From the NCBI RefSeq assembly GCF_000143415.4, contig NW_003314306.1:1179199-1243198 (forward strand): a stretch of 64,000 bases of DNA, written 5' to 3'. This document shows, one piece after another, positions 4,039-48,300 of the stretch. The first letter of the stretch is position 1; each line of letters starts with the position of its first letter. Source of the stretch: Selaginella moellendorffii (lineage: Eukaryota; Plantae; Lycopodiophyta). The notes beneath the pieces are model-generated. The model was not told the DNA's origin. It saw only the letters and a list, made by a program, of their open reading frames with translations, and ran no database searches. A program made the translations under genes and the position numbers.

Positions 4039-5649
4039 GGCGTAGACTCTTGCTTAGATATTTAGTCAAGCTAAATCTGATTGCCTAACTCATCGTTGTT
4101 GGTCGCAAAATCGAATCTTAATGAAACAGCAGATTTGCTGATTATAGTCCCAAGAAACATAAAACTTTATCAATGCAATGCAATTGAATTTAGCCCACAC
4201 CTCTTCGGTCCTTCTAAATATGATAGACCACGCTGCTTTAACACTTAGGGAACATACAAACCAATCGTTGAACTATCACTCTATTTACTTTGTTATCCTT
4301 CTATAGCTGTTATTGTTTTAGAATATTTTAAGAATACTATTTGTAATGGTTTAACAACAACAATATTTTATGATATCAACAACAAAATATTGACACAAAA
4401 CATTAGAGCATAGAGTGTGGAGTGATTTTAATTTATGTTTTCTCTTTTAGTTATCTTTGAAAAATATAAAATTTCCTTTTTTTCTTAAGGCACAAAGCAT
4501 GCAAAGATGGTGTGTTACTTTAACCATTAGCTTTGGACATAACAACCTCATAATGGCAAGAAAAGAAGCTAAAGAATCAATGAAATTTTTATCACTCTTT
4601 CACTAAAACATTTACTATTGATTATTGCTTCCCAAAATCACTCTAAAGAAGTATATAATGAAAATTTTCACGAGTGAACAATGCGTAAACAAGCATTATG
4701 GATTTTAAAGAGCACTGAATAGAGTATGAAACATAGATTATAAAGTAGATTATATAAAATTTTACATTAGAAAATAAAGTATATAATTTGCTTTTATCCC
4801 TCATCATTTTTGGTGTGGTGACTATGGAATTGTTTTGAGTTTTCTTTTTTTTAATTTCTTTTACCTTTCCTTTTCTACATTTCTAAAAGTTATGAAAAAT
4901 AAGTGGTCAAATAGAGTTTGATCAAAGTGTTATTCTAAACCATCATCCCTCACTAAATCATAATTTGTAGTTAGGTTTTTTTTGTCTTCCTGAGGAGTTA
5001 CAAGTTAAAATTCTTTACTTAATCTTTAAAAAACTTCACTTATTTGTTGAGAGCAATAAAAGTCCCAAGTTATCCTAATTCCATTTTCATTGAAAATATA
5101 AAATATTATCTTTACTTTTTCAAAAGTCTTAAAAATGAAAGGTGATTGAGAAAGTGCTCTTAGATATTTCTAGGTTGAGTTTGTGATATTAAATTTAGCT
5201 TTTGGACTTGGCTTATAAGTGGATGCCATGTAAACAGTAGGGATTAAATTTTTATGCTTGTGAGGAAGATATTTAAAACAATGATAGACTAAAAAATATC
5301 TTCATTAAATATATAGATTGGATATATAAGTGATAGTGATAAACAATTTTGGAATAAATCTTTTTATTGTTTGGCCTATTCAAAATTGTATATTAAAGTC
5401 TTGTTTCCAAGATCATGTTTAATAATACAGTTAGCATCATTCAAGAGAATTTGACTTTGAAATTCTTTTAATCATTGTCAATATTCTCATAAAGCATCAT
5501 GAATTGAGGAAAGCTTGGTTACAAATCTGTTACATAGAGTCACATTTGAAAATGTATATCATTACAACAATAATTTGTTATAGATTCTTGAATTTAGAGT
5601 TCCCAAGAGGTCACTTAATTGAGTTTAAATGGGATTTAAATTAAGTTTA

Positions 5650-5967
5650 TAAGAGTTCAAATATAAAAGGAAAATGCCCATGAATAAAAATACACTTACT
5701 TTTCCAATTAGTTAAGGGTTTTAGGAGAATTGGTTAGGATATTTGAGGTTAAGCAATACTATTCAAACTTAAAGATATATAACCCTAAATATCTTAAAAC
5801 CTTTAAATGAGGTGCATTTTTATTTATGAGTTTTTTCCCTCTATATTTAAACTCCAATGCTCCCTTATACCGTTGTCCTAAAAACCCCACTTTCTTGATC
5901 AGCCCTTTCCTTTTATAATTAAATTTTAATAAATCATCTTTCAAAGCATTCTCTTTAGCTGCTTACA
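5650..5967. mobile_element. Cluster of degenerate Cassandra-like LTR fragments in both orientations
   Basis: 5650-5755 (+) and 5755-5853 and 5900-5967 (-) align by eye to the LTR at 44739-44932; reverse-strand TGTAAGC terminus at 5967. Confidence 0.7.
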
Positions 5968-6087
5968 TTTGTCTTATAGCAATTCAAAAGAACCTATAGC
6001 AAAGATTTTTTAGTGCATTCATTCTTTTTGTGGTCTATATATAATTTTAAAATCCTCCTTTGGTGTAACTTATGAAATGCAATTGTT

Positions 6088-6430
6088 AATGTGGCAAGTG
6101 AACTTTGAGGGAGTGTTCAACTTAAAAAAGAAAGTAGCTAGTATTAGAGTTATTTTCACTAATCTAAAAGGCATAAAACACATATTGGATAAATTGTTAT
6201 AAATACCCACACTTACAACCAAGATGAGTATGCTACTTTGATTCAAGAATTGAAGGATGCAAAAGTATTAAGAGCTAAAGATGTGGTTATTATAGGAGAT
6301 TTGAAGGTAATTATGAATTAAGTGAATGGGAGTTAAGCATTTCTATCAAAAGATGGTCTATTCCTTCAAAATCAAACACATTGTAATAAGGAACAACTTT
6401 GAAACAAATTTGCTAGCTCAAGTTGGTAAT
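6088..6430 (+). mobile_element. Degenerate retroelement RNase H (Tat/Ogre-type additional RNase H)
   Basis: MWQVNFEGVF...ASIRVIFTN and NQDEYATLIQELKDAKVLRAKDVVIIGDLKVIMN*VNG resemble WxxxFDGA and NNxAEYxALxxGL...GDSxLVxxQVxG. Confidence 0.6.
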
Positions 6431-9341
6431 AGGAAGTCATAATAACTTAAAGCTTATCATAACAAAGTTAGTAAAAATTTCTTAGAGTGGAGAAGATTCT
6501 AAAATTAATTTTATAGTGTTTATAAATATTTGAATCTTAAAGTTTTTTACTTTTTAGCATTTATATCTAGTGCCCAAATTGATCCCTACAAATTCAGGGC
6601 AACAAATGACACAATGAATGATTACACTGTCCTAAACATTTGCCAACCAGCCTCAACTTCCTCCCTCCCCATGGAAGGTTTGCTTTGAACTCTTGATTGG
6701 ACTGATCAATCAATTGGTGGAACTAGGGAATTTGCACATATGGATGTTGAAAGGTTGAGAAGCCTTGTCACACACAATCCAAATAGCAAAAGCAAAACAT
6801 TCTTATACAGCCATTCCCCTCTTCTTTGTGGATTAGGAGTTTCTGAGGATGGGATGAAATCACACAATTACTGCTGGAATCTTATGAGTGATGGAGTTAA
6901 GGCCACCAGCTTGGATCATTTGCTATACTCTCCCTACTTGGTGCCAATTTTAAGCTCATTTACTTAATTTGGTTTACCATTTTTCATTTCATGGTTGTTC
7001 ACAAAAGAGTAATATTGTGCCTCTCACTAGATCACTCTTTGATTGTAAGAGACTATCCTTTTTATACCATTAGATTTCTGTAATAGACTAAGCATTCAGA
7101 CTTTCATAGTGGAGATCTCTTATTAACCACAATAGCTAAGACTGCACTCCTATTATTGGGAGAGTCAGAGATGGCACAAATTGCTTTAAAGGCCAGATGA
7201 TGGTATGGAGCTTAGTTACCTCCCTACCACCCTTCTACTCCACCCTGCTTTGTGTTCCATCTATCCATGATTGTTAGTAATGGCTCAAATCCTATTTTTG
7301 GTTTGCTTTGATATACCTAAATTATATTTAGATATTCTAGAATATTTTACCATCTAATGGTTGTTATTCATTTAGTAAATATTAAATTAATTCAAACTTA
7401 GATTAATCTTGTATTTATAATTTATAAATATGTTTATAATTTATGAACTTCCTTAAACACTTTCTAGTATATTCTTGTTTATTCTACCATCTAATGGTTG
7501 ATATTCAGTAAGATTAAATCTTGATTTATAAATTATAAACATGTTTATAATTATTGATCAATTGGATTATTTAAATAATACTAAATAGGAATGACACTAA
7601 TATTAAGCAAACCAAGCTGCATGCAATTTGTAGTAAATTATTATTAAATTTGAGAATATTTGTTTAATCTATAGTTATTTTTTATTTTAAACATGTATAA
7701 TAATAATAATCTTAACATTTTAACTTTTATTTTTCAATCCCTAATCAAGGTTTAATGTTCTAATACAATCTGTGCTAAGTTTTTAGTAGATTGCTCCTCC
7801 TTCCCAGTTCTTTCCACAGTCAATCACAGTAAGCTTAACAAAAGTCATCTTTAGCTGCATGGATCCAACTACCTGGAAATAGTGGACTAAGAGCTAGATA
7901 ATTGAGCAATCCCTTCATATTGAGATTGCCTTGTTGTAAAGCATCTAAAGCTCACGATTCTCCCATGGGGTATCATCTTCTTTGTACTGTTTATAGTGCA
8001 AGTCATCTTTTTTATTCTTTTAAAAGCTTTGTAGTTAAATAGAATATATCAAAATCTAGGACTAGCTGGAAGAAGTCCCAAGAATGTTATATTTCTCTAC
8101 TTTTAAATTTCAAATTAGTAAGGATTGGGTACAACTGATTTTAAAAATTAATAAATATAGATTATTTTTTCCTCGCATCAAAGAAAATCTGCTCTTTCTT
8201 GTGCTTTTTTTCAGCACACGAACTTGTGTCAAAAGCCTACTACCAAAGAAATCATAAAGCTTTTGATTCCAACTAATCTGCTCAGGCTGGACCCCATCCA
8301 AGGAATAACTTTGCGTGAACTTGAAATACTTTACCATTGCTGATCATATCAACATTTATCTAAAAAGATTTAAACTTAAATAATAATCAAGGTTTAATAC
8401 TACTTTTTTTAATTAGGTTGGTTCGCTCTAGTAGGTGAAAAAAACTCAAACAAAAGAGAAAGAATCAAGCATGGTTGTAGCTTCTAGAGCATGATAGAAA
8501 TATGAAAACCAAGTCGAATAACACTCCACAAGCACGTGTATATCAACAGTTCTCAGTTCTTGCAGTGACTCACAAGCTAAGTAAATCCTTGAAAACCATC
8601 ACATTGGGAGGTGTAGACACGTGGAGATGAACAGAGAGATCCTTGCGCATGGAGACACCCCAGACACAAAGTACTGCAACATGATTAGCAGGACGAAACG
8701 AGATCCACCTCAAAAGAATGACAATGGACATTGAGCGTCCAAATCATGATAGCATCACGTTATGCAACTTCTAACATGCCTTGTTAAGAACAGAAGAAGT
8801 TTCAGAGATAACTAGCCTCAAATGTTGGGAGTGCAACTGCCTCTATACAGTTCCAAAGTAAAACCACGAGTAAAACATTCAGTTTTGGAGCTCAAACATC
8901 TCATCTGGAGCATCATATTAGATTAGCAACTTTGGAGCACCACGTTAGCTCCTGCTAAGATGCATTTTAAACCCCTTCTCTTCATGAGATGGAAAAAATT
9001 TCTTTTGAGAGTTGGTTTCCTACATTATGTTAGTAGAAGTTGAATAAAAATGTTATCACCAGCATATTAAACATAAAAAATTAATAGCGCAGCAAATTAT
9101 TTACAAATTATGATACAAATCCCTTTAGTTTGTGTGGTAAAGTAAATGCCTTTGTGGACATCATCGCTTGTTCCTTTCAAGCACGGAAAACATAAAAGAG
9201 CACTTGACAAATGGTGGTTTGTGGTGCCCCAGCATGCTTGTGGGACAACTACGTGCTATTGTTTTTGCGTAAAGTTTTTAAAACCATTAGAGCGTTGTTG
9301 TTTCTTTTGCTTTGAAGAAATAATATGTCGAACTATAAACC

Positions 9342-29620: not shown

Positions 29621-31117
29621 GACAAATGTGGGAAAAAAATTTCTTGTGAGCCCCTTTGGTGTCTCCTGATCCTGCTTGTTATTCACCCACCTTTCTGATT
29701 TCTCCTGACACTGCACTAAATGTGCAGGTTTTAGACATGAGCTCTCTCTTGCTACTACCTTCTTTTTATCCCTCCCTCTCTCGAATCTACTGCTCCTTGA
29801 GCTGCTGCTGGTTCACAAGCCCCACAAAAAATTTTTTTTTTTTTTGGCCGCAAGAGGACATGTAGGCGGAGATATAAGCAATTTGGTCAACACGGAGGAA
29901 TTTAAGGTTTTTCAAAGTTTCTGTAAGAGCTCAAAGTAGAGACCAGCGTTAAAGAGGGCGAGCACTATCTCTTGATTATATCATAGAAAAGTAAACAAGG
30001 CAAAGGGGATGGATTGATTCACAGAGATCACGAACGCTTTGGGCCGAATTCTAAATGGAGCGGCTGAGATCATGATCAAGATTCACCACGAGTGGGCAAA
30101 TACGCGACCATCTCCCAAGTCAAAATGCGGGTGATTACTTTTAGGATCACGCCGAGGAATCCCTGACTGCTAAACAAATCCAAAGGGGAAGTTGACAATG
30201 AATGGGGAAGCTTGCCTGCCAGCTCGCACCACCTTTAAATTTAAGCTCGTTTTTGTCGGTGTTTTCTCGATCTTCTTCTTATTTAACTTTACACTCTCGT
30301 TCTCTCTCACGTGGTACCAACAATGTACCTTTAAGGATGAATCGATAGACAATTTTCCCAAGATTGGCTCTCATTTCCAATCCACTGTTGGAGATTGCGC
30401 AACGAGATTGTTGCTTTTTGCTTGGGGAGAAGGGAGATTTCGTTTGAAGTGTTCTTCTTCTGTAAAGCAAAGGTGGTGGGCGTGTGTGTGCGTGCTTTCC
30501 ATGATTGCGTACATGATTGAGTGGAGCGTGCACTATAAGGAGCTCACACCAAGAGGGGCTTATTCCCATTGGAGGTTGGCGAATTTTTCATACCCCCATT
30601 CATGTCCCTTCGCACAGCAAGAACAAAAAACCCCCAGAAAAAACGAGGCATGCGAACCACCGCCACCTTGGATGGATGATTCGCAGCTGATGATTTGCAT
30701 GAAAGCCATACAGTGAAAATTGGAGCTTCTCTTTTGTCCCCAATTTAAAAAAAAACATACTCAAAAAGATGAATTATTACTCTAATCGTCGCTGCTCACC
30801 CAATCGTCACCAGTTAATCAATCAGTAAAACAAGAAAAAAAAAGTAGTGCGAATTTGACCGAGGCATTGTTTGGAAGCATAGGCACAGGTGATCGATCGA
30901 TTTTACACTACTATACAAGACTGGGAGGCCGTAAGCATTGTCCTCTTGCTTTCGGCCAAACAAAAATGTAATCGAACTTCTTGGTCGGTAAAAAGGAACA
31001 CTTTCAAAGTCAAACAGAAGCTTGTCACCGTGTTCATCAATGTTTGACTTGTGACAAGGACTGGCACTGATATATTCCCCGGATCTTTAGGTCAGGGCTC
31101 GAATCGCGAGACCCATG

Positions 31118-31128
31118 TAGCCGTTGGA
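31118..31128 (-). promoter_or_regulatory. MSA (mitosis-specific activator, MYB3R) element
   Basis: TCCAACGGCTA on the minus strand fits YCYAACGGYYA; ~55 bp upstream of the Borealin-like ATG. Confidence 0.65.
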
Positions 31129-31182
31129 GGGAGATTTAAAGCTACCTCGGATATTCGCTCGCATCCTGGGATTTTAGGGCTC

Positions 31183-31737
31183 ATGGCGAGGAAGAGGAGG
31201 GCGCTGGCCGTCAAGAGCAGCAATGCGAGGGCGGGGGAGGAGGAGGAGGACGCGGCGGCGGCGGAGGATGATCGCGTGGCGGAGCTGTGCCGGGCGATAG
31301 ATTTGCAAGGTGAGAGGCTGCATTCGGGGGGAAATCTCTCAATCTTGGTCTCGACAGTGCAAGCGAGGGCGACGGCGATTCGAGCCATCCGCGACGCGCA
31401 GATCGCCGAGTTCCTGGCGCAGCTCCAGCTCCAGCAGGCGAGCTTGTCGGAGGAGATGCTGGACATGCCGATTTGCGACTTCCTGGAGCGGTTCTGCCCT
31501 AACACCGAGCTCGTGTGCAAGGAGAGCGGAGTGGTGGAGATGAGGAAGAAGAAGCTGCCGACGAGCGATGCCGGGGACCCTCTGGCTTCCTTGTTTGCGC
31601 TCAGTGCGCTCAAGAACACTAGCTCCACCGCCGCCGCCGCCGCCACCGCCAAAAAGAGCTCCGCTTCCTTCTTTTGCACGCCGCGAACCTTGGGTGGTGG
31701 GATATCCTCGAGCATGAAGACTCGAAGTATGCGCTGA
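31183..31737 (+). pseudogene. Borealin-related (BORR) N-terminal part, truncated
   Basis: VQARATAIRAIRDAQIAEFLAQL...EMLDMPICDFLERFCPN resembles plant BORR (AIRAIRDxEIExxL...EQLxTPVLxFFxENxPN). 48-bp intron at 31310-31357. Ends in two TGA codons before the expected C-terminal GSP motif. Confidence 0.65.
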
Positions 31738-32419
31738 GCTTGAGAGGCTGGGCTCTTGCACCGAACAACCATTCTTTGGATCAAGTAAGTGTTACGTTTT
31801 TCTTTTCTCTTCCTCTCCTTGTGTATTGAATTTGTGTTTGCTTTCTCTTGAAATTCTTGCGGTTCTTTCTATTTTGTCTTTGTTCTTTGCTTCAAGTCTC
31901 AATCTCTGCTCTCGCTTTGTTATGTCACACAATTACTGACAAAATGTCCCTGTTCCTTTCCTAGTTTCCATCGTGGACGGGAAGGAGGACAGGTAGCTGG
32001 TCTTGTTGGATGGAATCAGGAATCTCATATTGTGTTGCTCTTCTGTCAGATCAGTCAATCAGACGTTCTTCTCAAATTGATGTGCAACAAGACAGTATGT
32101 CCATGCATCACTTCGAAGTTTCAGGTCTTGTCATGGAAGGGATATCCGTTGTTTCCGTCTTCCTAGCCGGAGCTGGTCATTTGGATAGGCATGTGTACTT
32201 TTCGATGGGAGTGACACTATGAAATAGGTGTCATGAGTTCGGAAGTTATCGTCACCTTGAGGAAAAAATCTTGAGCAGATAATGGCTGCCTCAACAGGAT
32301 ATCAATGGTTTGACTTTTTGGTTCACCTGACAGGGATTGAACCTGCTCCGGAAACAGACGTTCATTTCCTATCGACTTGTCATTTGGGCCGACACTTGGC
32401 TCTGTAACCAGTTATACAC

Positions 32420-32574
32420 ATAGGAAAAGTGCTGGTGCTGCTTGCCGCAGCTCCGATGGAGATCTTCTTGCTGGGAGCTGGGAGCTGCTCGCTCAAGCGC
32501 ATGACAAGCCAACTTGTTGCAATCCGGGCATTTGCTATCAGACTCCTCCGTTTATCGGGGCTTGCTATCCGTGA
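32420..32574 (+). pseudogene. Knottin-type peptide pseudogene copy 1
   Basis: Signal-peptide relic KVLVLLAAAPMEIFLLG is out of frame with PTCCNPGICYQTPPFIGACYP*, a paralogue of 38149-38331. Confidence 0.75.
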
Positions 32575-32639
32575 ATTTCATGAACACCATGACAATGGTC
32601 CGCCATCCTTACGGGGAAGGGTAACGCCGTGTATATAAG

Positions 32640-33356
32640 GGCAATGTTGGGGAAGAGAAACGCGCCAGAGGCTGTCGCTGATTTTCTGGGAACGGTGCGA
32701 GTTAAGCAGGATCAAGTCAAAGGAAAGTTAACAGAGGTACGACATACAGAGTGGCGACTGAGACCCGCGTCTAAGATTGCTGCATCGCATTTTCTGTCCA
32801 GGGGCTGTGGCTAGTGTGGAAGTTTCAAGGTTACCATACTTTGAATCACTACATGAAACAAAAGACATTTCCAGAGAATCTCTCAAAGCAACTTCTCGGA
32901 GACAGTGTAAGGTTGTACGCCTTGGCTAATATTAGATGTTGGTAACAGGGTTGTTTTAGGCCACAAACAAGCGTTATGGCTCTATAAACCAACGACAAAA
33001 TGCTCTAATTCTCCGAATTATAATGACTCACTTGTTATATAACCTACAACAAATCCATAGAACCAGTAAGCATGTTTGCCGCCGAATGTCTTTTAGATCT
33101 TGTTCTTACTTTATCCCCAGGCGTTGTGCACTGTGATGTAAAGCCATTAAATCTAATTCTCGCTGGTGATATGGATACTTTTAAGCTTGTCGACCTTGGC
33201 GCATGTGTCAATCTACGGTCGGTTACAATTACGTAAGTGATGAATTTTTCGCAAATCATGCTTTTCAAATGAAAATCTCAAGTACAGGTTCCGAACGAAA
33301 CAATCATGGACCCAGATTATGCACCTCCTGAGCAGTACGTCATGCCGAGCTTGTAA
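32640..33356 (+). pseudogene. STN7/STN8-like kinase internal fragment with introns
   Basis: RNAPEAVADFLGT, GLWLVWKFQG..TL..YMKQKTFPENL, GVVHCDVKPLNLIL (HRD->HCD), FKLVDLGACVNLRSGYNY/VPNETIMDPDYAPPEQYVM; both ends missing. Confidence 0.8.
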
Positions 33357-33423
33357 GCCTGCGTGCTCTTCTTCTTGTTCGGTGTCGGAGCACTATCTCT
33401 TGATTATATCATAGAAAAGTAAA

Positions 33424-33890
33424 CAAGGTAAAAGGGATGGATTGATTCACAGAGATCACGAACGCTTTGGGCGGAATTCTAAATGGAGCGGCTGATCGAG
33501 ATTCACCATGAGTGGGCAAATACGCGACCATCTCCCAAGTCAAAATGCGGGTGAATACGTTTAGGATCACGCCGAGGAATCCCTGACTGCTAAACAAATC
33601 CAAGGTAAAGGGGATGGATTGATTCACAGAGATCACGAACGCTTTGGGCGGAATTCTAAATGGAGCGGCTGATCGAGATTCACCACGAGTGGGCAAATGC
33701 GCGACCATCTCCCAAGTCAAAATGCGGGTGAATACGTTTAGGATCACGCCGAGGAACCCCTGACTGCTAAACAAATCCAAGGTAAAGGGGATGGCAGAGA
33801 TCACGAGCGCTTTGGGCGGAATTCTAAATGGAGCGGCTCATCGAGATTCACCACTAGTGGGCAAATACGCGACCATCTCCCAAGTCAAAA
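33424..33890 (+). repeat. 177-bp tandem repeat, ~2.6 copies
   Basis: CAAGGTAAA unit starts at 33424, 33601 and 33778; single-copy version at ~29996-30190. Confidence 0.92.
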
Positions 33891-33980
33891 AAGCTTGCCT
33901 GCCAGCTCGCACCACCTTTAAATCTAAGCTCGTTTTTGTTGTAGAGACCAGCGTTCGTGGAAGAGTTTACTACAATCGCA

Positions 33981-34646
33981 ATGGCCTTGATCGCGTCCTT
34001 GACCAACAAAATGTTGCTCGTCGCTGCTCTCATGGCCGCAGTGGTGGTCGACTCCTCCAGGATGATCCAGCGTCTCGTTTTGCTCTCGCCACCAACGGGG
34101 CCTAATCCGGGCGGGAACTCGAAGGATGTGGACGAGGTGGCAATGGAATTCATCTCTCCGCCATCCGGTCCCAGCCCTGGTGGTAACGGTGGATCGCGGT
34201 TTGAGGTCTCAAAGCCCCGGACGCCATCTCCTCCGGCCGGTCCGAGCCGAGTCCACAATGGAGAGGGTCAGTTCGTCGTCTCCAAGCCCCGCACAACGCC
34301 ATCTCCTCCGGCCGGTCCGAGCCCAGTCCACAATGGAGGGGGCCAGTTCGTCGTCTCCAAGCCCCGCATAACGCCATCTCCTCCGGCCGGTCCGAGCCGA
34401 GTCCACAATGGAGAGGGCCAGTTCGTCGTCTCCAAGCCCCGCACAACGCCATCTCCTCCGGCCGGTCCCAGCCCAGTTCATAGAAGGCCCGTTCGTCGTC
34501 TCCAAGCGCCATCGCCTCCGTCCGGTCCCAGCCCCGTCCACGACGAGATCGATCTTCACTTGGTTCCAGCGGGTCCGAATCCACTCCACAACTTTGGAAC
34601 CGTGTTCCATAGCGTTCCGGAGGGGCCAGATCCAGTTGGAAACTAG
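33981..34646 (+). CDS. Secreted multi-peptide precursor with CLE, TDIF-like and IDA/PIP-like modules
   Basis: Signal peptide MALIASLTNKMLLVAALMAAVVVDS; nine modules including PSPPAGPSRVHN, HLVPAGPNPLHN and terminal HSVPEGPDPVGN; 75-bp internal tandem repeat (34281, 34356, 34431). Confidence 0.85.
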   Translation: MALIASLTNKMLLVAALMAAVVVDSSRMIQRLVLLSPPTGPNPGGNSKDVDEVAMEFISPPSGPSPGGNGGSRFEVSKPRTPSPPAGPSRVHNGEGQFVVSKPRTTPSPPAGPSPVHNGGGQFVVSKPRITPSPPAGPSRVHNGEGQFVVSKPRTTPSPPAGPSPVHRRPVRRLQAPSPPSGPSPVHDEIDLHLVPAGPNPLHNFGTVFHSVPEGPDPVGN

Positions 34647-34950
34647 GGTGGAGCTATGGTCTTCTATTGATCTTTTCTTGCCATTCATGCTTGTTTCTTA
34701 ATCGTCGCCCAACACTTCGTTTTTTTCTGGCTCAATTGCATCCTCTCTTGGATAAATATTGTAATTACTTGCAAAGAAATAGACAATGCTGAATTAATCG
34801 CCCCAGTGTTCTTTGAGATTGCTCTTCCTAGATTCCAAAGCTGGCGCTAATTTGTTCTCGGAATTTCTGAACGAACGGCAAAGTTGGCGCTAAATTTTAA
34901 AACAAACGAGAGGGATATTCGGCCCTTTGTGCTAGATTTAGGGTTCTTTC

Positions 34951-36202
34951 ATGAGACAGTGGCTATGGCGGAATGCCGCTGCTGCGCGAGCTGGGATATT
35001 TGGCTGTCGATCGGGGGGCCTCTCCAGCTGCGCTCTATTCGGCGTTGAGAGCAGAGGTGCTTACGCGATTTTCTTGCCCGGCGTCAAGACGCGACGCACA
35101 GCTTGATCTTTGTGAGGCACAAGAAGCTCCGGCTCAGGCCTACGACGAACAAGGTTCTGGCGCTGGAGAATGTGGCAAGTTGGAAGTAAGTTTCGATGCT
35201 TTCGGGGCGTGTGGAGTTAGATCTGATTGATTGAACTACGATTTGTTCCAGAGCAGGCAGAATGAAGTTCCGAATGAAAGAACTAAAGCGCCTTATGATG
35301 TGCTCCCGAGAAGAACTAAGATGCAAAGAGCACGGGACTTGGTGGATGCAGTAAGTTCTTCTCTCTTTATTTCTTCTGGATCTTTCAAAACTTCGTGCAC
35401 AGGTTTTGCCACTTCCCGATGTCAAAGGGGAGATTTGGGCCGCTTGCGATACATGGATTGCCTGGGAGCTAAGATTTCCTCTGCATACAATCGAGATGGC
35501 CACTCACAGGCTCTTCCGGTTGAAACAATGGCGCAGAGTTATTCACGTAAGTTCTGTGAGTTCTCTGTTCTATCTGACTGGAAAAACGTCACAGGTGATC
35601 AAGTGGATGTTTAGCAAAGGCCATGGCTTTACAATGAACACTTATGGATGTCTCCTCCGGGCTTTGGACATTGATGGCAGGGTGGACGAGGTTGAGCACA
35701 TCTGGCATACTTTTGTGGTGACGAAACAAGAGAGCGTCCCTAGAGTTATGTATGCTCGAATGATCACGACGTATGATCGGCGAGCATTGCCAGACAAAGC
35801 TATCAAGGTAGGTAGACGAAACGTTTTGCGATCGTGGTGGTGATGGTGTTTGTTTTGTGGTCGTAGATGTTTAAAGAGCTGGAGCTTTCAGGAACGAGGC
35901 CGGATCCAGCGACAATAATCAAGATCGGGAAGATTTATGAGAAGCTCGGTTTCACGAATAAGACGGCGGAGCTACTCGAGAAGCACAAGCCAACGAAGAC
36001 GTTCATATCGTTTAAGTTCAGGTGAGCCTTGTGATTGGGCTTGGCGGAAGTTCTTACGCTTGTGATCCTGCGGCTGCTCAGAACGAAGAGTCACAAATTC
36101 ATGGGAGTCCCGGGCCATGACAGGAGGCGACTAACTTCTTCGGAGAAACAGAAAAAGAGGAAACTTAGAGAACGTCTTGCTACGATCATAGACTTTAGCT
36201 GA
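34951..36202 (+). CDS. Short P-class PPR protein (At4g21190/At4g18975-like), organelle-targeted, multi-exon
   Basis: MRQWLWRNAAAAR presequence; DTWIAWELRFPL...KQWRRVIH/VIKWMFSKGHGFTMNTYGCLLRALDIDGRVDE...SVPRVMYARMITTY. Confidence 0.85.
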
Positions 36203-36361
36203 GGCGAGCTTCTGGTCTTCTACTTTTTCTTCTTGATCAGGGGCAAATCTAAAAAAGTTTCTATAGGTTTTTTTTTTCCGGCAGCACCCCGTTTTTAAGT
36301 CATGGAAGTCCAAATCCATCCTTTAGCCGGCAGTGGTGCGAAAACAGTGGCGACAAGGAAT

Positions 36362-37442
36362 CACCGAGCTCGTGTGCAAGGAGAGCGGAGTGGTGGAGAT
36401 GAGGAAGAAGAAGCCGACGAGCGATGCCGGGGACCCTCTGGCTTCCTTGTTTGCGCTCAGTGCGCTCAAGAACACTAGCGCCACCGCCGCCGCCGCCGCG
36501 GCCACGGCCAAAAAGAGCTCCGCTTCCTTCTTTTGCACGCCGCGAACCTTGGGTGGTGGGATATCCTCGAGCATGAAGACTCGAAGTATGCGCTGAGCTT
36601 TAGAGGCTGGGATCTCGCACCAAACAACCATTCTTTGGATCAAGTAAGTGTTACGTTTTTCTTTTCTCTTCCTCTCCTTGCGTATTGAATTTGTGTTTGC
36701 TTTCTCTTGAAATTCTTGCGGTTCTTTCTATTTTGTCTTTGTTCTTTGCTTCAAGTCTCAAGCTCTGCTCTCGCTTTGTTATGTCACACAATTACTGACA
36801 AAATGTCCCTGTTCCTTTCCTAGTTTCCATCGTGGACGGGAAGGAGGGCAGGTAGCTGGTCTTGTTGGATGGAATCAGGAAGCTCATATTGTATTGCTCT
36901 TCTGTCAGATCAGTCAATCAGACGTTCTTCTCAAATTGAAGACATACTGTGCAACAAGACAGTATGTCCATGCATCACTTGGATGTTTCAGGTCTCGTCA
37001 TGGAAGGGATCCGTTGTTTTCGTCTTCCTAGCCGGAGCTGGTCATTTGGATATTGGCATGCGTACTTTTAGATGGGAGTGACATTATGAAATAGGTGTCA
37101 TGAGTTCGGAAGTTATCGTCACCTTGAGGAAAAAATCTTGAGCAGATAATGGCTGCCTCAACAGGATATCAATGGTTTGACTTTTTGGTTCACTTGACAG
37201 GGATTGAACCTGGCGTTCTTTTCCTATCGGCCACTTGTCATTTGGGCCGACACTTGGCTCCGGTTATATACATAAGAAAAGTGCTGGTGCTGCTTGCCGC
37301 AGCTCCGATGGAGATCTTCTTGCTGGGAACTGCTCGCTCAAGCGCATGACAAGCCAACTTGTTGCAATCCGGGCATTTGCTATCAGACTCCTCCGTTTAT
37401 CGGGGCTTGCTATCCGTGAATTTCATGAACAGCATGACAATG
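36362..37442 (+). repeat. ~1.1 kb segmental duplicate of 31503-32597 (BORR 3' fragment plus knottin pseudogene copy 2)
   Basis: Near-identical from CACCGAGCTCGTGTGCAAG to CATGACAATG, with small indels. Confidence 0.95.
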
Positions 37443-37961: not shown

Positions 37962-38127
37962 ACCACTAGATAGAAAGCATGAAATTGTGAGTTCTGAAAC
38001 AACTATGCATAGCTTCAGATAAAGAACAGTTTATTCATTCGACCATTAGATAGAAAGCATGAAATTGTGAGTTCTGAAACAACTATGCATAGCTTCAGAT
38101 AAAGAACAGTTTATTCATTCGACCATT
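37962..38127 (+). repeat. 80-bp tandem duplication
   Basis: TAGATAGAAAGCATG... at 37967 and 38047; lies in the 3' region of the knottin gene. Confidence 0.95.
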
Positions 38128-38148
38128 TGTGCTTGTACATGCTACTGA

Positions 38149-38331
38149 TCAGTAGCAAGGGCCAACAAATGGAGGAGTGCTGTAGCAGATCCCGGGATTG
38201 CAGCAGAAGGGCATGCTAGATGGGCACTGTGAACTACTTGTGCATCTCCGGTCCTGAGCACTAGCGACTTCCACAAAGCAAATTACTACCAGAGCAGCAA
38301 CCAGCGCAAACAAAACCGCGAACTTCGACAT
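38149..38331 (-). CDS. Secreted 6-Cys knottin-type (cystine-knot) peptide
   Basis: Signal peptide plus QDRRCTSSSQCPSSMPFCCNPGICYSTPPFVGPCY (C-X5-C-X6-CC-X4-C-X9-C); minus-strand TATA-like ATAAATA at ~38370. Confidence 0.85.
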   Translation of the reverse strand: MSKFAVLFALVAALVVICFVEVASAQDRRCTSSSQCPSSMPFCCNPGICYSTPPFVGPCY

Positions 38332-38834
38332 TGTGAAACCAAGATGATTATTCCTCTTGCAGCCTACCTATTTATGAACCAAGTGTTGCCTAAAGGCCGG
38401 TCAAGATTTACATACGCAGTGCCTTCGAGGAACATGATAATGACTGAGAAGTCAGAGCAGCTGTTCACAAGTGCATTTTATAAAGTTAAGTGCTTGAGAA
38501 TGTTCTTAGAATATTTTCCTTTTATTGTGGAGATTATATAATTTTCAACCTTTTTACTATTAACATTAACTTTTTGTTTTGTAGGGTGATGCAAGCTCAA
38601 GTCAAAGCTTTCGGATATCAAAGAACCAATTAGCCAATAGTGAGTATGCATCATCTTCCTCTTGCATGATTATTTATTTTTTATTTTTTTCATCTACTCG
38701 GGTGCGTGAAAATCTTCTACGCAATGGAATTCCCAGCGATTCTGGGAAGAATGGTGTGGGAAATGCATCACTGAGAAAAAGCCCTTTCAAATTGTCTCAG
38801 CTACCTCGCAAACACTTCCAATCTGATTGTATAT

Positions 38835-39085
38835 CTCGACCAGTAGTTCTCTGGAACGCAATGATCATGACATATGCCATATATAGCAAGCAAGCTGCAA
38901 AGTGTGAGCTTTCTAACTATTCTGACAACCCATAGTTTCTCGCGGCAGAGAATACGATGACAGCTCTGGTAAACTTTTATAGAAAGTCTAGCAATGTGGA
39001 TGACTTACGAGCAGTGACAGGTCACAGGATGAAGCAGCTGAGCTTGGTACCTGGAACACGACAATCACTGGCTTGCTTACGTCCA
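38835..39085 (+). pseudogene. Degraded PLS-class PPR fragment
   Basis: VVLWNAMIMTYA, TALVNFYRKSSNVDDLRAV and TWNTTITGL in shifting frames. Confidence 0.55.
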
Positions 39086-39978
39086 AAGAAAGGATGAAGA
39101 TCGAAGATGCAACAGGTATTATCCTTTTCTCTTTCTTTTATACAACAACACCACAGTGAGATAGAAATAAGCACAACACTCACACATGGCAGGGCCTCCA
39201 CAATGCAGTATTTTTAGAGCAAAGGCCTCTGCCACATGCCACATCATGAGAGGCAATGTCCTATGCTCCAGATAATTGATAGAACTTATCAAATAGGACT
39301 TAAGAAGCTCAATGAGATGTACATATAAAGGTTACATATAAAACAAACTTTCATGCTGACTGCTGATGGGAATTCAGTACAAAATTGGTAGTGCATAAAT
39401 CTTTTCTACTTCTCCCAAGAGAGCTAAGGTAACTTTATGTGTAAATAAAATTTAAATTTATAAAGGAATAAAATATTTATTATTTGTGCTTATTATTATA
39501 TAAAGTTTTTATTTAACCACTTTTTTTCTATCTTTTCCAATGGAGCTGGATTAAGATCAAGTGCTTTTAAAGCCATAACATATAAAGTAAATTACACACT
39601 TGTCAAGTATTTGTCATCTTTATATTTATTAAGAAATATAACCATGGCAAAAATTGAACCCTAAACCTCTACTCATGGGATTAATATGAATCCAGACCTA
39701 AATTACATATTTGGATTAGCTTGGGGTCTAACCACATTAGTTTCCAAAACTCCTATAAAAATAGAGTTACAATGAGCTCCTAACAGTTAAAACACTCTAA
39801 TATCACTAGCTTTTTCGAATCCTCTTCTTCAACTCTACTCAAATCTTGATATTCTGCGGAAGTTATATTAAGTGTTGAAGTAATCCAATATAGTACTTTA
39901 CATATAGCTTTAGCAAATTATTTAGCACCAACAATGACTTTTTTATTTATATATGCTAGTAAAGTTTGATGGTTTGAG

Positions 39979-40153
39979 TGTAAGCAATAAAAAAGAACAA
40001 CTCAATAAATAATCCATTAGGGTTCAAATATAGTGGGAAAAGGCTATGAATAAATTGATTAAAGGTTTTAAGATACTTTAAATTAAACATCTTTGGGTTT
40101 AAATAGTATTGAGTTGGGTGATTTTATAAGAAGTTCAAATTCAAGAGTTTACA
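39979..40153 (+). mobile_element. Degenerate solo LTR of the Cassandra-like family
   Basis: TGTAAGC...GTTTACA termini; flanks TTGAG/CCGAA are compatible with a deaminated CCGAG TSD. Confidence 0.75.
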
Positions 40154-40199
40154 CCGAATTTGATGATATAGCCTTTGAAAAACATTTTTACCTTGGATT

Positions 40200-43100
40200 T
40201 CATGACGATATCAAAGATTTCATACTCTCTCATTTAGATCTAACATCCATTGATATTAATATTTATTATAATAATCAATTGGAAGAATGATAATTGAAGT
40301 ATCATCATCAAACCTTTATGCCTTATCCAATGGCCTCAATCTTGGAGTAACTAGCATATGAGAAAATAAGATTTTTCAGTGCCATAGAGAGAATTGTGCA
40401 ATGGAATTTGATGCCATAATCAAGCATCCAATAGATCATTTCTTGCCTATAATACAACAAGGTATTATGGCTTGACAATTGTTTAGGGTGGAATTTAGGC
40501 CGATTCTAGTTAGATTTTAGTTTAAGCAAGGCATAATTCCAATAGAAATTAGAGCCATATATTAACGGGTTTTCCCAATATTGAATGACAATGTTGAATT
40601 AGACAATTCTCCCCTTCTCCAAATCTTCTTCTTATGCTTCTCTAATATTAATTTCTCACATTTCTTTACATGAGTTTTGGCCATTATAATCCTAGTTTTT
40701 TTTTTGCAATTACCATTCATCTAATGTCAACTTCATCTATCATGATCAAATCTACTTTTCCCTTATGTAGGTTGATTTCAAGGATATTTTCAACAAAAGG
40801 CTCATTCACATTTTACCATCATATCAACTTTATAATTATTCTATTGATCTTATAAAGAGGAAATTACCACCATTTAGTTATATCTATAATCTTTTACTAC
40901 TAAAGTTGGAAACATAACTAAAGATCACTACCTCCATCCTTGAGGTATTTTTTAGTTCCATAGCAAAGGCTCTACTTGGCAAGTCTAAGAGTGTTCATCC
41001 CTAGTAAGTCCCTTTAACATTTTCTATTATGGGCTTTATCCTCAACTCAATTTTACGACCCTTCTTTGGGTCCTTCCTTAGAAATTACTTTTCTTAAACT
41101 CATAATACTATTGTATTTTATAGTTTATTTCCTTTAAGTGTCCTTCCCACTTGGTCACCTTGACTAAATCACACTATATTATTTATTCAAATCACTACTT
41201 TAAACTAGGAATACCGTTCCTTAACCCACCAAGGAGCTTGTCCTTAACTATCAGCTATAGAATCACTTAATGGTTTTACATAAACAATTTAATGGGTTTT
41301 CAAACCTCTAAGTTGTTGACTACAACCCCAGGGCATCCCCCACACTTGGCAGTGTGCATAAGCTAATCCTTTTAGTCAAGGGTCTATAGCAATTGAGTTT
41401 AGGTATCCCCATTTCATTCACTATATCCTTGGTGCCACTTACACCAAAGTGTTCATATTAGATATGCCAAGATTTCACACTAAACAATATAACCATGTAT
41501 TATGATTTTAGGGCATCTCTCGCTTGGTAGTGTGCCCAAGCTAACCTCCTTACTAAGAGTCTATGACCACTGAAAAATAAATGTCCTCATATTCTAAAAC
41601 ATTATTATGGCCTAGTGAATTGGTACTTGAACCCAAGTATTAAAAAGTTAGGACTTAAACCCAACCTCCACATATGCATCTACGGACGGCATCATCTAGA
41701 ATGCCTAGCATGATTCCCTACGTTGATACATCAATTTATATCCAATGCACGGTACGAATCAAAGTTTAGGAACCTAGTTCCTCCAAACTTCCAAGTCCTA
41801 TCATTTGATAAACTAGTTGACCAGCATGTGATCATGCATAGACTCCTTCATGCTTGGCCCCATGAGCCACCTTTTTGAAGTCATCACTTTCAATTAGGTT
41901 CTTTGTTCCTCCTCCTTGTTAATCCCATTTAGCAAGTCACCCAATCAACATAACATGATTTTGAAAGTTTTTAAACATCAAATTTCGTTTAAAGCCATTT
42001 TTTAAAACACTTAAGAACCATTTCCCTAACTTTGATAGCTTTGCTTTATAACAAGCTTCAAGACCATACTTCTGCTGCACCACTGTAATTTTGTATATTC
42101 CTATAAACTATTTACACTTGGCTTTTTAGGTACTAACTTACCTAGAATTGTCTTTCGGAATATGATTTTATCATGTAGTTTCCTAAAGCTTCCTTTTTTA
42201 GAAGTTTTCTATAATTTCATACTTTAAACTCACCATGGCACCACAATTGCCAATAATAACACCTTTGAGCACCCATTTGATTTTTCACTCTCAACTTACA
42301 TAATTAATCTTGGTATGCCCTTTGATTCCTATAGTTTGATTGTATCCTTTTATTACTTGCTTTCGGCCCTACACATTTTCTTCTGTTATTCTTTTCTAGG
42401 CTAGAAAGATAGCTTTGCATTTTCTACCATACCTCAGCAAATATTTTTAGGGATGAACCTACTCGATAGCCTAGAGAGTGGTTTTTCAATATGGATATAT
42501 TCATCTTGCAATCCTATACATTGGAATTATTATTGCTACTTATGCACTTTTGTATACCTATCACTAGTATTGCCAAAATTCCTTTTGACTTTGTCTAATT
42601 CGGATAGATGGATTTCTCCCATCTTTGCAACTTTGGATGTTGAATAGCACCTCCTATCGATTATTCGTTAGGGATTTAATCCCTTAGGCTTTATTAAATG
42701 CCCTCATAATACCAAACACCACTTTCTGGTGTTTTAAAGTATTTATATATCTTAATGATGGCCTTCTTTGGCAATGAGCATTTTCTTTTACAACATTAAT
42801 TTATTATATCGCAACATAAGCAATTTATCTCTTGAGGGATATATCTAACCCCCTTATCCAAATAAAAAGTCTTGGGAAGTTAACTTTCACTTATCTAATC
42901 AATTATGTCATACCTTTTGTTTAATTACCTTATATTTGTTACGTTTTATAACTCATTATTGGTTCTTTCACACCTCCATCATTATTTGGGTCATTGCACT
43001 CGAATTATATACCTTTTAAATTAAGCTATGTCAATCCCATTTCTATTGGGATTCCTTTGGCAAGGGGTTTTCATGAACTAACTAATTTGACCTCAAGGTA

Positions 43101-44489
43101 TCACACCTTAGAACATTTGGTGTCTTCACACCATTGACTCTATAAGTATACCCTCATGACACTTACCACTTATGTCTAAGTTTTTGCTAAGACCATCGTA
43201 ATCATTTCTTATGCAACTATCAATTCACACTACAATATAGTATTCACATATAACAACTTGTCAAAGTTGTTTTCTTTCATAAACACCTTTCCACGACTTT
43301 AGTATGGCATATTCTGCTATTAATGAGATACCCATTGTTTTCATATTTGGATCTTATGATCCTCCCAATCTTTCATAAGGTACAACACACCTTAGTCTAT
43401 ATGTATTTCAAATAATCCCTTAGGATCATTCTTTAACTCTATAGAGTCATCTAGTTTTTGGACTTGTTAATCTGAGAACTCATAATGTCCAAGCTTTATA
43501 ACTCCTTTTGAGTAGCCATCTCGTTGGAATACAATTTCATGTATTCATATTCTATTCACAAGGACTATATTTGCAAATGTTGCTTCGATACTTGATCATC
43601 CTTTATTTTACATGAGCTATTTTTGATTTACAACATTGATTCACTATATCGCAATATAAGCAATTTATCTCTCAAGGGATATATTTAACCTTCTTATTCA
43701 AATAAAAAGTCTTGGGAAGTTAACTTTTACCCATCCAATCAATTATGTCACATCTTTTGTTTAGTTACTTTATAGTTACAACTCATTGTTAGTTCTTCCA
43801 CACCTCTATTATTATTTAGGTCACTGCACTCAAATCATATACCTTCTAACTTAGGATATGCCAATCTCATTTCCATTGGGATTTTTTTGGCAAGGGGTTC
43901 TCATGAACTAACTAACTTGACCTTGAAGCATCACGCTTTGGAACATTTAGTGTCTCCACACCATCAACTCTATGAGCCTACCCTCACAACACTTACCACT
44001 TGTATCTAAGTTTTTGCTAGGACCATCATAGTTTTTTCTTATACTAACTATCAATTAGCACTATAATATAGTGTTCACACACAACAACTTTTCAAAGTTG
44101 CTTTCTTTCGTAAACACTTTTCCATGACTTTAGTATAGCATGTTCTGCCATTAATGAAATACTCACTACTCTTATATTTCGATTTCATGATCCTCTCAAT
44201 CTTTCATAAGGTACAACACACCTTAATCCATATGTGTTCCCACTAATCCTTTAGGATCATTCTTTAACTCTATAGAGTCATTTAACTTTTGGACTTGTTA
44301 ATTTGATAATCTGTAATGTCCAAGCTTATGGCTTCTTTTGAGCTGCTATTTCATTAGAATACAACTTCATGTATTCATGTTCTATTCACAAGGACCATGT
44401 TTGCAAATGTTGTTTCAACACTTATAAGCTATTTTGCCCCTTAAAACTATCCTTCTACGAGGAGAACGCTCACTCATCCTCTAAGAACA
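40200..44489. mobile_element. AT-rich decayed retroelement field with copia-like protease relic and ~830-bp direct repeat
   Basis: Minus-strand YWMLDYGIKFHCT (~40395-40435) resembles WxLDSGASxHxT; 42790-43595 is repeated at 43630-44426 with mostly transition differences. Confidence 0.5.
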
Positions 44490-44589
44490 NNNNNNNNNNN
44501 NNNNNNNNNNNNNNNNNNNNNNNNNNNNNNNNNNNNNNNNNNNNNNNNNNNNNNNNNNNNNNNNNNNNNNNNNNNNNNNNNNNNNNNNN
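44490..44589. other. Assembly gap (100 N)
   Basis: Run of N. Confidence 1.
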
Positions 44590-44738
44590 ACACTCAATTT
44601 TTGAGTCGAAGGCTTAATCCAAATGTGTTACGCTGTTTGCCTTCTACTTTGGCCACTACCATGTGGCACCCTCTCGGCTCTACTTTAGGGCTTAGGGATT
44701 TGTGTTTCATATTAAATTGACTTATGTGATGATTACAA

Positions 44739-45309
44739 TGTAAGCAACCAAAGAGAACGACTCGAAAGGCGATCCATAAGGGTTCAAATATAAAGGGAAA
44801 GGGCCCATGAACAAGAGTGCACCCTTTTTTCCAATCGGTTAATGGTCTTGGGATATTTGGGTTAAGTGTTTTTGGGTTTGAATAGTACTGGGCTGGGTGA
44901 CCTCCCAGGAAGTCCAAACTTAGGAGCTTACATTTGGTATTAGAGCGGTCTTGAGTCTAAGGGAATCACACCACATGTTGATTAACATCTGGCTAGTTTA
45001 GTTTGCTCCCGCTAGGCTCGACCCAAGGGGTAGGGTGTCAAGAGAGCGGGGCTCTCGGGAGAGCTGCGACTTTCAGCTTTCATTCACGAGAGTGTGAATT
45101 TACGGGGAAACGTAATGGATTGTAAGCAACTAAAGAGAACGACTCGAAAGGCGATCCATTCAAATATAGAGGGAAAGGGCCCATGAACAAGAGTGCACCC
45201 CGTTTTCCAATCGGTTAAAGGTCTTGGGATATTTGGGGTTAAGTGTCCTTAGGTTTGAATAGTACTGGGCTAAATGACCTCTTAGGAAGTCTAAACTCAA
45301 GAGCTTACA
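44739..45309 (+). mobile_element. Complete Cassandra-type TRIM (5S-derived LTRs)
   Basis: LTRs 44739-44932 and 45121-45309 with TGTAAGC..GCTTACA ends, PBS TGGTATTAGAGC (44935), 188-bp non-coding interior, TACAA TSD on both sides, 5S-like segment at 44861-44915. Confidence 0.92.
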
Positions 45310-48300
45310 TACAACTTTATTAGTATTTGGGAAATTGATGAGTGAAAAATAATATTTTGTACTTGTTATGGCCACTTTGAATACATAGTGATGCCTTTTG
45401 CTTTGATAATTGCCTTTAATATTTTCCCACATATAGCAAATTATGTTTTTCATGATTTTGTTTTTGTCTCATTTATTATGATGACATATCTTCTATGAGA
45501 TTCAAGAAGAGCATAATCATTATATGTGTCTTTTTTTTCAGCACCTTTAACAATAAGGCATTTTTGCAAAGTTGGAGAAATGTTATTTTAAATAAGATGT
45601 AATTATCATTTTTTCATGATCATTAATCCTTCTAAGATTTCCACCATTCTTGGGTGGCAATACTGAACTTCTATTATGATATCTAATGCTTCCTTGTTTT
45701 GCAAACTTGTATTGACATTTCTTTTTGGACTTTTTTAAAATCACTTTTCCTTAAATACAATTCATTATAAAGAATGTATATTTTGTATTGTTTTTGCTAC
45801 CCAGACTTATTTTTATCTCTTGAAATTTAGATTCACTTTCACTCTAGATTATCTATCCAAATAATACAAAGATATATTTTATCGAGGTAAATATTTTAGA
45901 GTTTACTTTATGTACTATCTTTTCATAGTAGGAACCAAAATTATGACATCTTTAATAGGGTGTTACTTACAATTATAGACTCTTTCAAAGTTTATAATTT
46001 CTTTAAAGATTCTCCCCAGATAATCACTTAATCTTGTATTTATAAATTATAATTATAAACTTCCATTTGATTAATTAGATTAATAAATAGAAATAACATT
46101 ACTATTAAACAAACCAACACACAGCAAATTATAGTGATTATAAAAACCTCTACTATTAATCTTTGATAGGAATCCTTAATTGGCATTTGGCTCAATAGTC
46201 ATAATTATTATGCCATTTTTGGTTTGTGATTATAAATTACTTAGAGAAAATAAATGGCATTTGAACTCCAGCATCAAACTCTTAAGGGGGGGTGTCCAAA
46301 TGCATAGATAGTGGTTAGGTTTTATTGTTTGACTCCTTGCTAATATTGTCTTTATTTTATATCCTGTTTGTCAAGCTCCATACCATGTTAGATAGTGGAG
46401 TATCTATTGGTATACTGAAATAGTGCTAAATTCCATTTAGCATTGTTTTGTATATTGGTCTTAGCATTGGAATACTAAATGTTTTAGGACTATTTCATTG
46501 TCACTTTATACTCCTATTCTTTTGCTCTTTAGTTGTATGTTCAAAAGTTGTTTTATGGTCTAGTTCTTTCACTCTTTGGCTATATATTCAAAAATTTAGT
46601 TTTGTCCCTTTGTTCAATAACCTAAGGCTATGAAACTCAAATTTCACTCTATTGCCCTTGGCATATGTGTTCAAAGGTTAAGTTCTGCTCCATCGTTATC
46701 TTATAGTATAGGGTAATTATATGCATTACATTTAGTAAAAAAGGATATATTTCAATGAGTACTATCCAATGAGATTATGCAATTAATCCTATTGCATATA
46801 TAAAGATGAAAACAATAATCCAAATGAGTATACATTTGATTACTAAAGCTTCATGTGCATCCTTTAGAATAGATTTTGGTTACCATAAGTTATCACCAAC
46901 TATTATCACTCAACTATAGAGTTCCTTCTTGTCACATAAACAATGCCAAATATGAATCTATGGTCTATGAAGCTTATGATATTTAATCATTCCTAATAGA
47001 TACACTTTTAGTATTATCTATGTACCAAGGCTGGAAGATTGATTTCAATTACAATAAAAAATTTAACTTCTTCAATTAAATCTATACATCTTAAAAGCTT
47101 GGCCAAGTAGATATTAGTAAGAAGTAAAATAAAAACTATATATCTTTCATTATAGAACATTCTAGCAATGATTTCCATTTTGAAATTGTTTAGAAATGGT
47201 GATGAAGCAATCACTTGTGATAATGGAATTGCCCATAAAAGAAACACTGTGTGCATTTCTTGTTACACAACCCTCTTAGCATAGATACCAAAATTATCAT
47301 GCCAGCATTAAGAGCAGTGTTACATGTGAGGGATACCTAGGAAACTTCTGGGTCCTCCCATATTTTATGTGGGGGCATGGGATCTGTCTAGGTTTACCTG
47401 GCAGTGCCCTGGGCCCTGGTTCTGGGCCTGGGAGAGCATTGGCCATACACGTGTACAAAAAATAGAAAATCTTAGAGATAAAATACTTAAAAAATTACTA
47501 TATATAGCATGCTAGTCTACTAGAGCTGTCTAAGTGATCATCAGTACTAATTTTGTTAGGGTTTCTTAGAGATGTATTTATCTTGACTGTTAATTTGAAA
47601 CATCACAAATTTAAATAGGCTAAGCATGATTTCTTATTTAAAATTTTCTCTAATCAAGGTTTAAAATTAATACTATTACTACAAATTGTGTTTAAACTTC
47701 TAACTTTCATCTAGCCAGATTGCACTGTGAGTAGCAAATATGGATCTCCACGATTTCATCCTCAACTGCCTCCCTAGATTGAGGATGGCTCCACCAAGCA
47801 TGTCCATCTCTCCTTGGGCATTCTTGCTGCTGGAGGAAGCAAAAAATCTCAAAGTATACACAGCAATTGAACCTCATATCCTAGTGTGACTTTGCTTTTG
47901 GCCATGCTTGCACTTTCTCTGCTGGGAGTCTCTTGTTTGCTAGGAGTGATGGCAGGAAAGCAGCACTACTCCTACAAGCAGTCATCTCAGCAAGATGTAC
48001 AAGAAAGGATTTTTTTTTAACAAATCTTGTAAGCACATCCCATGATAAGAATCTTAATCCAATCTAGGGAATCAGCAGGTAAGATTCATGCTGTTGTGTC
48101 TTTTTCTTTTCTTTGGGCTAGATACAAAGGATTTCAATGATAGATTCTCTTGGGTCAATGCCCATTTTAACCATAGTTTAGCTATATTATTGGTATGAAT
48201 TATTTTAACTTAGTATCAATAATTTCTTCAAGTGATCTATGACAAAGCAACCAACGTGTGCAAATCTAGAAAAAGAAAATTTACTTTACTAGTGAAGGTA

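Follow-up and report, generated by a model that had tools for sequence, protein, structure and literature searches.

An unannotated reading frame of Selaginella moellendorffii related to CLE genes and predicted to encode a secreted precursor with IDA-like and CLE-type modules

Introduction

CLE and IDA are among the oldest peptide-hormone families of land plants, and their receptors form sister clades of LRR-RLK XI. Precursors with several CLE motifs have been described in rice, wheat and Medicago; they carry two to six motifs, one every 25-37 residues, and the release of multiple peptides and a role in amplification have been proposed for them (Oelkers et al. 2008, PMC2254619). An IDA gene encodes a protein of 77-103 aa whose single motif is close to the C-terminus, and the angiosperm tail is (R/K)(R/K)HN (PMC4526919). 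The IDA peptides of lycophytes and bryophytes have the form PPxGPSPxHN, for example MpIDA1 of Marchantia, EVPPQGPSPIHN (PMC8462819). The receptor HAESA requires a free C-terminal Asn, and CLV3 is not bound by it. The PIP/PIPL peptides are defined by an SGPS core and a C-terminal GxGH (Vie et al. 2015, PMC4526919). An origin in angiosperms has been reported for this group.

In S. moellendorffii, SmIDA1-3 were found by tBLASTN, a PSGP core and an HN end being common to CLE and IDA, and the species has three HSL-clade genes as well as PXY- and CLV1/BAM-clade receptors (Furumizu 2021, PMC8462819). A common CLE/IDA ancestor has been proposed from the PSGP...HN scaffold of both families (Furumizu 2021) and from 'IDA-like CLE candidates', which are 'transitional' single motifs (Zhang 2020, PMC7552357). 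The same study lists two annotated genes with repeated modules, JGI 416983 (257 aa, ten modules) and 420331 (207 aa, eight modules), hereafter Sm416983 and Sm420331. Both were filed as CLE group 3C on the single motif HLVPAGPNPLHN and have a SignalP value of 0.864 (Zhang 2020 Table S1, PMC7552357), and both are among the CLE motifs used in choosing a substitution matrix (Table S9). In S. kraussiana, H-type CLE peptides applied from outside did not affect the xylem.

Results

An intronless ORF carries a putative signal peptide and nine modules

The window analysed here is a 64-kb stretch of S. moellendorffii DNA. On its plus strand, an intronless ORF of 221 codons and a stop (33981..34646) encodes a peptide precursor, and it maps to scaffold GL377610.1 at about 1,213,179-1,213,844 (GCA_000143415.2), where it was placed via a neighbouring protein. 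An exact-sequence look-up found no record of the ORF product, because it is hidden inside a 614-aa chimeric GenBank model; the word-index protein search missed this model since it falls outside the length window of that search. Pfam gave no match on the precursor. The translation agreed, in positions and letters, with the original prediction of a signal peptide followed by nine 12-residue modules. The probable signal peptide (33981..34058, plus strand) has an n-region with K10, a hydrophobic core at residues 11-23 and then a polar DSS; the 9-residue Kyte-Doolittle mean of the core is about 2.8, as expected of a CLE secretion signal judged by hydropathy. A loose 12-mer pattern, applied to all six frames of the window, had nine matches, each of them inside the ORF, and the mean was 0.02 matches in composition-preserving shuffles of the window.

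The neighbouring genes are of ordinary plant types (GT92, BAG/IQ, thaumatin, RING, PUB/UBA, histone-fold, ribosomal S15, PPR and F-box), and no receptor gene was seen among these neighbours of the ORF. Elsewhere in the window, a 60-codon ORF on the minus strand (38149-38331) has a signal-peptide-like start and six Cys in its last 33 residues (...CTSSSQCPSSMPFCCNPGICYSTPPFVGPCY), and may encode a small cysteine-rich secreted peptide. Two blocks, 4000-8000 and 38000-48000, have 28-37% G+C against about 50% in the rest of the window and are probably repeat-rich DNA.

The ORF is a third copy of a catalogued gene family

We compared the protein encoded in the window with Sm416983 and Sm420331 by eye, from the printed table. 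All three copies have the same signal peptide and the same central unit, their first two modules agree apart from one substitution, and there is no difference in the C-terminal 37 residues, which include both CLE motifs. Module number varies, with nine in the window copy versus ten and eight in the annotated ones. By this protein comparison, the ORF is a third copy, without an annotation of its own, of a catalogued CLE gene family. Since no locus is represented by more than two haplotypes in the assembly, three copies mean at least two loci. The window copy differs from both annotated copies by the absence of LLL from the signal-peptide core, by the absence of DDV, and by a Pro9 to Arg change in two modules. 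Within the annotated copies, every central module ending in HN is identical. SmCLE12-15 encode five H-type motifs (Hirakawa and Bowman 2015), a number that fits one gene carrying two of them, as here.

Beyond S. moellendorffii, an exhaustive phmmer search of 1.84 billion representative proteins returned no relatives, only seven weak proline-rich matches, and the word-index protein search, run with the whole protein and with residues 172-221, found no relative. The searched collections do not hold the two annotated copies, so this absence of relatives is weak evidence. One of the weak phmmer matches is a metagenome contig (ENA ERZ1034429; 1.7 kb, low coverage) in which a 229-aa ORF at 792-1481 has seven SG(P/S)NPGGNS modules; these resemble module 1 and are spaced by about 20-25 residues, and the called ORF lacks a signal peptide. 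No description of IDA-like and CLE modules within one precursor was found in the literature searched. The original remark that the cross-family mixture was undescribed is to be qualified: the gene family was already catalogued as CLE, and other 'transitional' motifs had led to the proposal that CLE and IDA share an ancestor.

The modules fall into three classes

As the original prediction had proposed, each 12-mer was scored by identity to reference peptides, here taken from Furumizu 2021 (PMC8462819) and Zhang 2020 (PMC7552357). The modules are not all CLE, and the five central ones are nearest to IDA-type peptides. In place of the graded series that had been suggested, we observed three discrete classes.

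The first class contains two intermediate modules, module 1 (LSPPTGPNPGGN, 34083..34118, plus strand, as for all modules) and module 2 (ISPPSGPSPGGN, 34152..34187). Both combine P3, a trait of IDA, with a GN end, which is a trait of lycophyte/bryophyte H-type CLE peptides; module 1 also has the N8 of the latter.

The second class is formed by the five central modules. Modules 3 (34224..34259) and 5 (34374..34409) share the sequence PSPPAGPSRVHN, which is IDA-like with the P9R change, and module 4 (PSPPAGPSPVHN, 34299..34334) is IDA-like and has the form of all central units in both annotated copies. Module 6 (PSPPAGPSPVHR, 34449..34484) ends in HR and is without the terminal Asn. Module 7 (PSPPSGPSPVHD, 34509..34544) has an IDA-like core with a true SGPS and an Asp at its end; this HD is also present in both annotated copies. 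The central modules show 8-9/12 identity to the 'PVPP-type' PVPPSGPSPCHN and 7-8/12 to MpIDA1, versus 4-7/12 to the CLE references. At the family-distinguishing positions, they have Pro and not Val at 3, Ser and not Asn/Asp at 8, and no Arg/His at 1. Their core is PP-[AS]-G-P-S, as in IDA, with AGPS in modules 3-6 and strict SGPS in module 7 and also in the intermediate module 2; P7, the anchoring-Hyp position, is present in all modules. With respect to the IDA tail, three of the five end in HN, one in HR and one in HD, and HN is preceded by P-V or R-V and not by a basic pair; MpIDA1 likewise has P-I-H-N at its C-terminus (Furumizu 2021, PMC8462819). A conserved basic flank, KPR(T)T, precedes each central module. 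The precursor does not have the small, single-motif layout typical of IDA prepropeptides: it is 221 aa long, its IDA-like motifs recur in the interior, and CLE motifs form its end. Similarity supports describing the central repeats as IDA-like, and as ligands they are predicted only.

The third class comprises module 8 (HLVPAGPNPLHN, 34557..34592), which is the CLE motif on which the family was filed as group 3C, and module 9 (HSVPEGPDPVGN, 34608..34643), an H-type CLE located directly before the stop codon. They show 8-10/12 identity to the CLE references (module 8 is identical to MpCLE2 at 9/12 positions and module 9 to SmCLE14, HSVPSGPNPVGN, at 10/12) and provide the 12-residue motif characteristic of CLE, which is located at or close to the C-terminus and has R/H1, P4, G6, P7, N/D8, P9 and H/G11-N12. 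The assignment of the last two modules to the CLE type was thus supported. The central repeats had been predicted to be IDA/PIP: the IDA part holds, since they are nearer to IDA-type than to CLE references, and the PIP part does not, because they have no C-terminal GxGH. Membership in PIP/PIPL was rejected for the whole precursor, as GxGH ends none of the nine modules, whose ends are GGN, VHN, VHR, VHD, LHN and VGN.

The central units are recent copies of a 75-bp repeat

Tandem Repeats Finder delimited an array of a 75-bp unit at 34221..34507 (plus strand; 3.9 copies, 92% matches), each unit consisting of one 12-mer and the 13-residue spacer GEGQFVVSKPRTT, and the core of this repeat is unique to the ORF array within the 64-kb window. 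The array is recent and unstable, given that units 1 and 3 (those of modules 3 and 5) are one synonymous base apart and that copy number varies among the three gene copies. The central units are therefore near-identical recent copies of one unit, and their sameness carries no information on selection.

Module 2 and its spacer align with the central unit over the whole 72-75 nt of DNA, including the GG.(R/Q)F.VSKPRT spacer; judged by this alignment, module 2 is an older copy of the central repeat unit. Module 8 and the central module use the same codon at four of their seven shared residues, with about 2.5 expected, a difference that is not significant. The idea that the modules diverged by tandem repetition is hence sustained by the DNA alignment for module 2 versus the central units and is not sustained for the CLE modules, whose codon sharing does not exceed chance. 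It is plausible that the IDA-like and CLE modules go back to a single ancestral unit in the gene.

In unit 4, two deletions of 5 nt and 10 nt leave nine codons out of frame between them (34482..34508, plus strand), so that the alignment shows the spacer RRPVRRLQA instead of NGEGQFVVSKPRTT and HN has become HR. The net loss of 15 nt restores the frame, and both CLE motifs remain readable.

The window copy has an insert close to its ATG and is at most weakly transcribed

Upstream of the ORF there is an insert of about 4 kb (29936..33955), flanked by the 15-bp direct repeat GTAGAGACCAGCGTT at 29936-29950 and 33941-33955, that stops 25 nt short of the ATG. A contig of a related copy, assembled from a DNA run, aligns from 33954 into the ORF and is unlike the window upstream of this point, which suggests that the insert is not common to the related copy. 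A TATA-like TTTAAAT is located about 60 nt before the ATG, within the insert end.

Some features of the insert itself were also recorded. The same block, a 177-bp repeat plus 49 nt, is found close to each end (30004-30256 and 33424-33939), and the insert contains kinase-like exons. At 33424-33890 the 177-bp tandem repeat has 2.7 copies with 94% identity. A DNA run contains a form with fewer 177-bp copies; in it, 33603 is joined to 33891 through 24 different letters, which match about 30183-30207 of the left-hand copy.

RNA-seq contigs identical to the window copy over 34350-34650 were found in three RNA runs from two studies; the contigs do not give the strand. In run X4, a 223-nt contig aligns to 34350..34572 without mismatches or gaps (depth 4.7) and crosses the frameshifted spacer that is known only from the window copy. 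Runs X1 and X16 cover 34376-34643 at a depth of 2-3. GT..AG joints in both neighbouring genes identify the three runs as RNA, and no coverage was detected on 33438-34241 or 34644-34911, which speaks against DNA contamination. The RNA is limited to the 3' ~300 nt of the ORF at a depth of 2-5, with none over the 5' 370 nt or the 3' flank. The window copy is thus at most weakly transcribed.

A PPR-like gene (34973-36500+, plus strand) begins 327 nt downstream of the ORF, is spliced with GT..AG joints and has a contig depth of 125-150 in two RNA runs. One adapter-bearing contig end places a fragment start at about 34936, near this gene.

Discussion

A derived copy of a polyprotein-type precursor, or a decaying duplicate

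These observations lead us to regard the ORF, with modest confidence, as probably a third, derived copy of a small S. moellendorffii family that encodes a secreted, polyprotein-type hormone precursor of the CLE family. According to this reading, the precursor would enter the secretory pathway, where its prolines would be hydroxylated, and proteases would cut at the conserved flanks, that is, at KPR(T)T before the central modules, the end of the last module being set by the stop codon. The two H-type CLE dodecapeptides would be the most secure products, and PXY/TDR- or CLV1/BAM-clade receptors their probable readers. Up to three IDA-type peptides, PSPPAGPS(P/R)VHN, may also be released and would fit HAESA/HSL-clade receptors. 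Against this reading stand the sparse RNA, the absence of relatives beyond the species in the collections searched, the PVHN or RVHN end in place of the basic pair before HN of angiosperm IDA, and the lack of a xylem response to applied H-type CLE peptides in S. kraussiana. Given that HAESA requires a free C-terminal Asn, the modules that end in HR and HD would not qualify, and the internal modules would need exact C-terminal cleavage. The window copy itself has drifted, as seen in the loss of a terminal Asn by the compensated frameshift, the two P9R changes and the 4-kb insert near the ATG.

Whatever the family does, the window copy could instead be a decaying duplicate, severed from its promoter by the insert and gathering lesions. 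We regard this as a serious possibility, somewhat short of an even chance. The insert end only 25 nt before the ATG, the two deletions with nine codons out of frame and HN turned into HR, the P9R change in two modules and the signal-peptide core shortened by LLL are all what decay would leave, and no RNA was found over the 5' 370 nt. Moreover, the other frames of this GC-rich repeat are open too, for 81-159 codons, so that an open frame is a weak sign of selection. However, the deletions add up to exactly -15 nt and keep both CLE motifs in frame, three RNA runs have mismatch-free contigs across the copy-specific spacer and no coverage of the neighbouring intergenic DNA, and the TATA-like TTTAAAT lies about 60 nt before the ATG.

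Are the central repeats ligands?

Besides our preferred reading, two other views of the central modules were considered. One is that the two C-terminal CLE peptides are the only ligands, the central repeats being a CLE-derived 'variable domain' that underwent a minisatellite-like expansion, with an IDA likeness that comes from the shared Pro/Gly/HN scaffold; we consider this a live alternative, though less likely than not. In its favour, the motif by which the family was filed as CLE is close to the C-terminus, where CLE genes typically carry it, and the C-terminal 37 residues are invariant across the copies, in contrast to the repeat number and the central residues. One central module ends in HR and another in HD, which is incompatible with the free Asn needed by HAESA, none of the central modules has (R/K)(R/K) ahead of HN, and the PSGP core and HN end are in any case common to CLE and IDA. 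This view does not account well for the departure of the central modules from CLE at P3, at S8 and in the lack of R/H1, positions at which they match the IDA of non-flowering plants, nor for the conserved basic flank before each of them, nor for the complete identity of the HN modules in the annotated copies.

The other view is that of a heterotypic polyprotein, releasing IDA-type ligands for the HSL clade together with H-type CLE ligands for the PXY/CLV1 clade, in a gene that preserves a route from CLE to IDA by tandem duplication and divergence. This proposal is speculative, and we hold it to be unlikely.

Two readings that can be set aside

A structural hydroxyproline-rich glycoprotein, with extensin/AGP glycomodules and no hormone function, would share with this precursor a signal peptide, the abundance of Pro (19%) and Ser (11%) and the many SP, GP and TP dipeptides, but it is very improbable, since the SP3-5 runs and Tyr cross-link motifs of extensins are absent (no SPPP or longer run, Pro runs of at most two residues, no Tyr and no Cys) and the period is set by 12-mers ending in HN or GN, among them two bona fide CLE motifs, the last of which ends at the stop codon.

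The 614-aa GenBank model (GCA_000143415.2; 31183..34646, plus strand), which has a Pkinase hit and shares the stop codon of the ORF, fuses kinase fragments from the insert with the peptide ORF. The RNA contigs that map to the kinase exons are spliced at GT..AG joints and have about 95% identity to the window (2-7 mismatches per 100 nt), and from 33348 their sequence is unlike it; being mismatched and leaving the locus at that point, they derive from a parent gene elsewhere. That this model is the true gene, a kinase fragment spliced to the peptide ORF, is hardly credible: the model does run to the ORF's stop codon and an in-frame AG acceptor exists at 33943-33944, but the RNA-seq contigs show no joint leading into the ORF, those on the kinase exons come from elsewhere, and each of the other two copies is annotated as a protein in its own right, starting with the same MALIAS... 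signal peptide.

Comparison with known precursors

A lycophyte precursor with both motif types and intermediates in one frame would make the common origin of CLE and IDA directly testable. If the heterotypic proposal were true, this would be the first multi-motif precursor with modules addressing different receptor clades. The locus also carries a lesson for annotation, in that a peptide-hormone ORF can be concealed at the end of a chimeric kinase annotation.

The closest known genes are Sm416983 and Sm420331, from which the window copy differs by the insert upstream and by the lack of a stand-alone annotation. The multi-CLE precursors of rice, wheat and Medicago resemble this one in having one exon, a signal peptide and similar spacers (Oelkers et al. 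2008, PMC2254619). Those precursors, however, repeat near-identical canonical CLEs (PMC2254619), whereas five of the nine modules here lack R/H1, V3 and N/D8 and look like IDA. The likeness to IDA/IDL lies in the PP-x-GPS-P-x-HN core, the Pro at the anchoring-Hyp position and the His-Asn end of three modules (PMC8462819; Zhang 2020), and the difference in that the motifs are internal, repeated and in the same precursor as CLE motifs. Compared with H-type CLE peptides (SmCLE14, HSVPSGPNPVGN; MpCLE1, HKNPAGPNPIGN), module 9 has the same GN end and module 8 the His start; however, module 9 has D8 and not N8, and module 8 has a PLHN end as in R-type CLE. Repeated motifs are also known from PIP2, PIP3 and PIPL1, with two each, and from CEP9, with five, and the SGPS core is shared with modules 2 and 7 (Vie et al. 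2015, PMC4526919).
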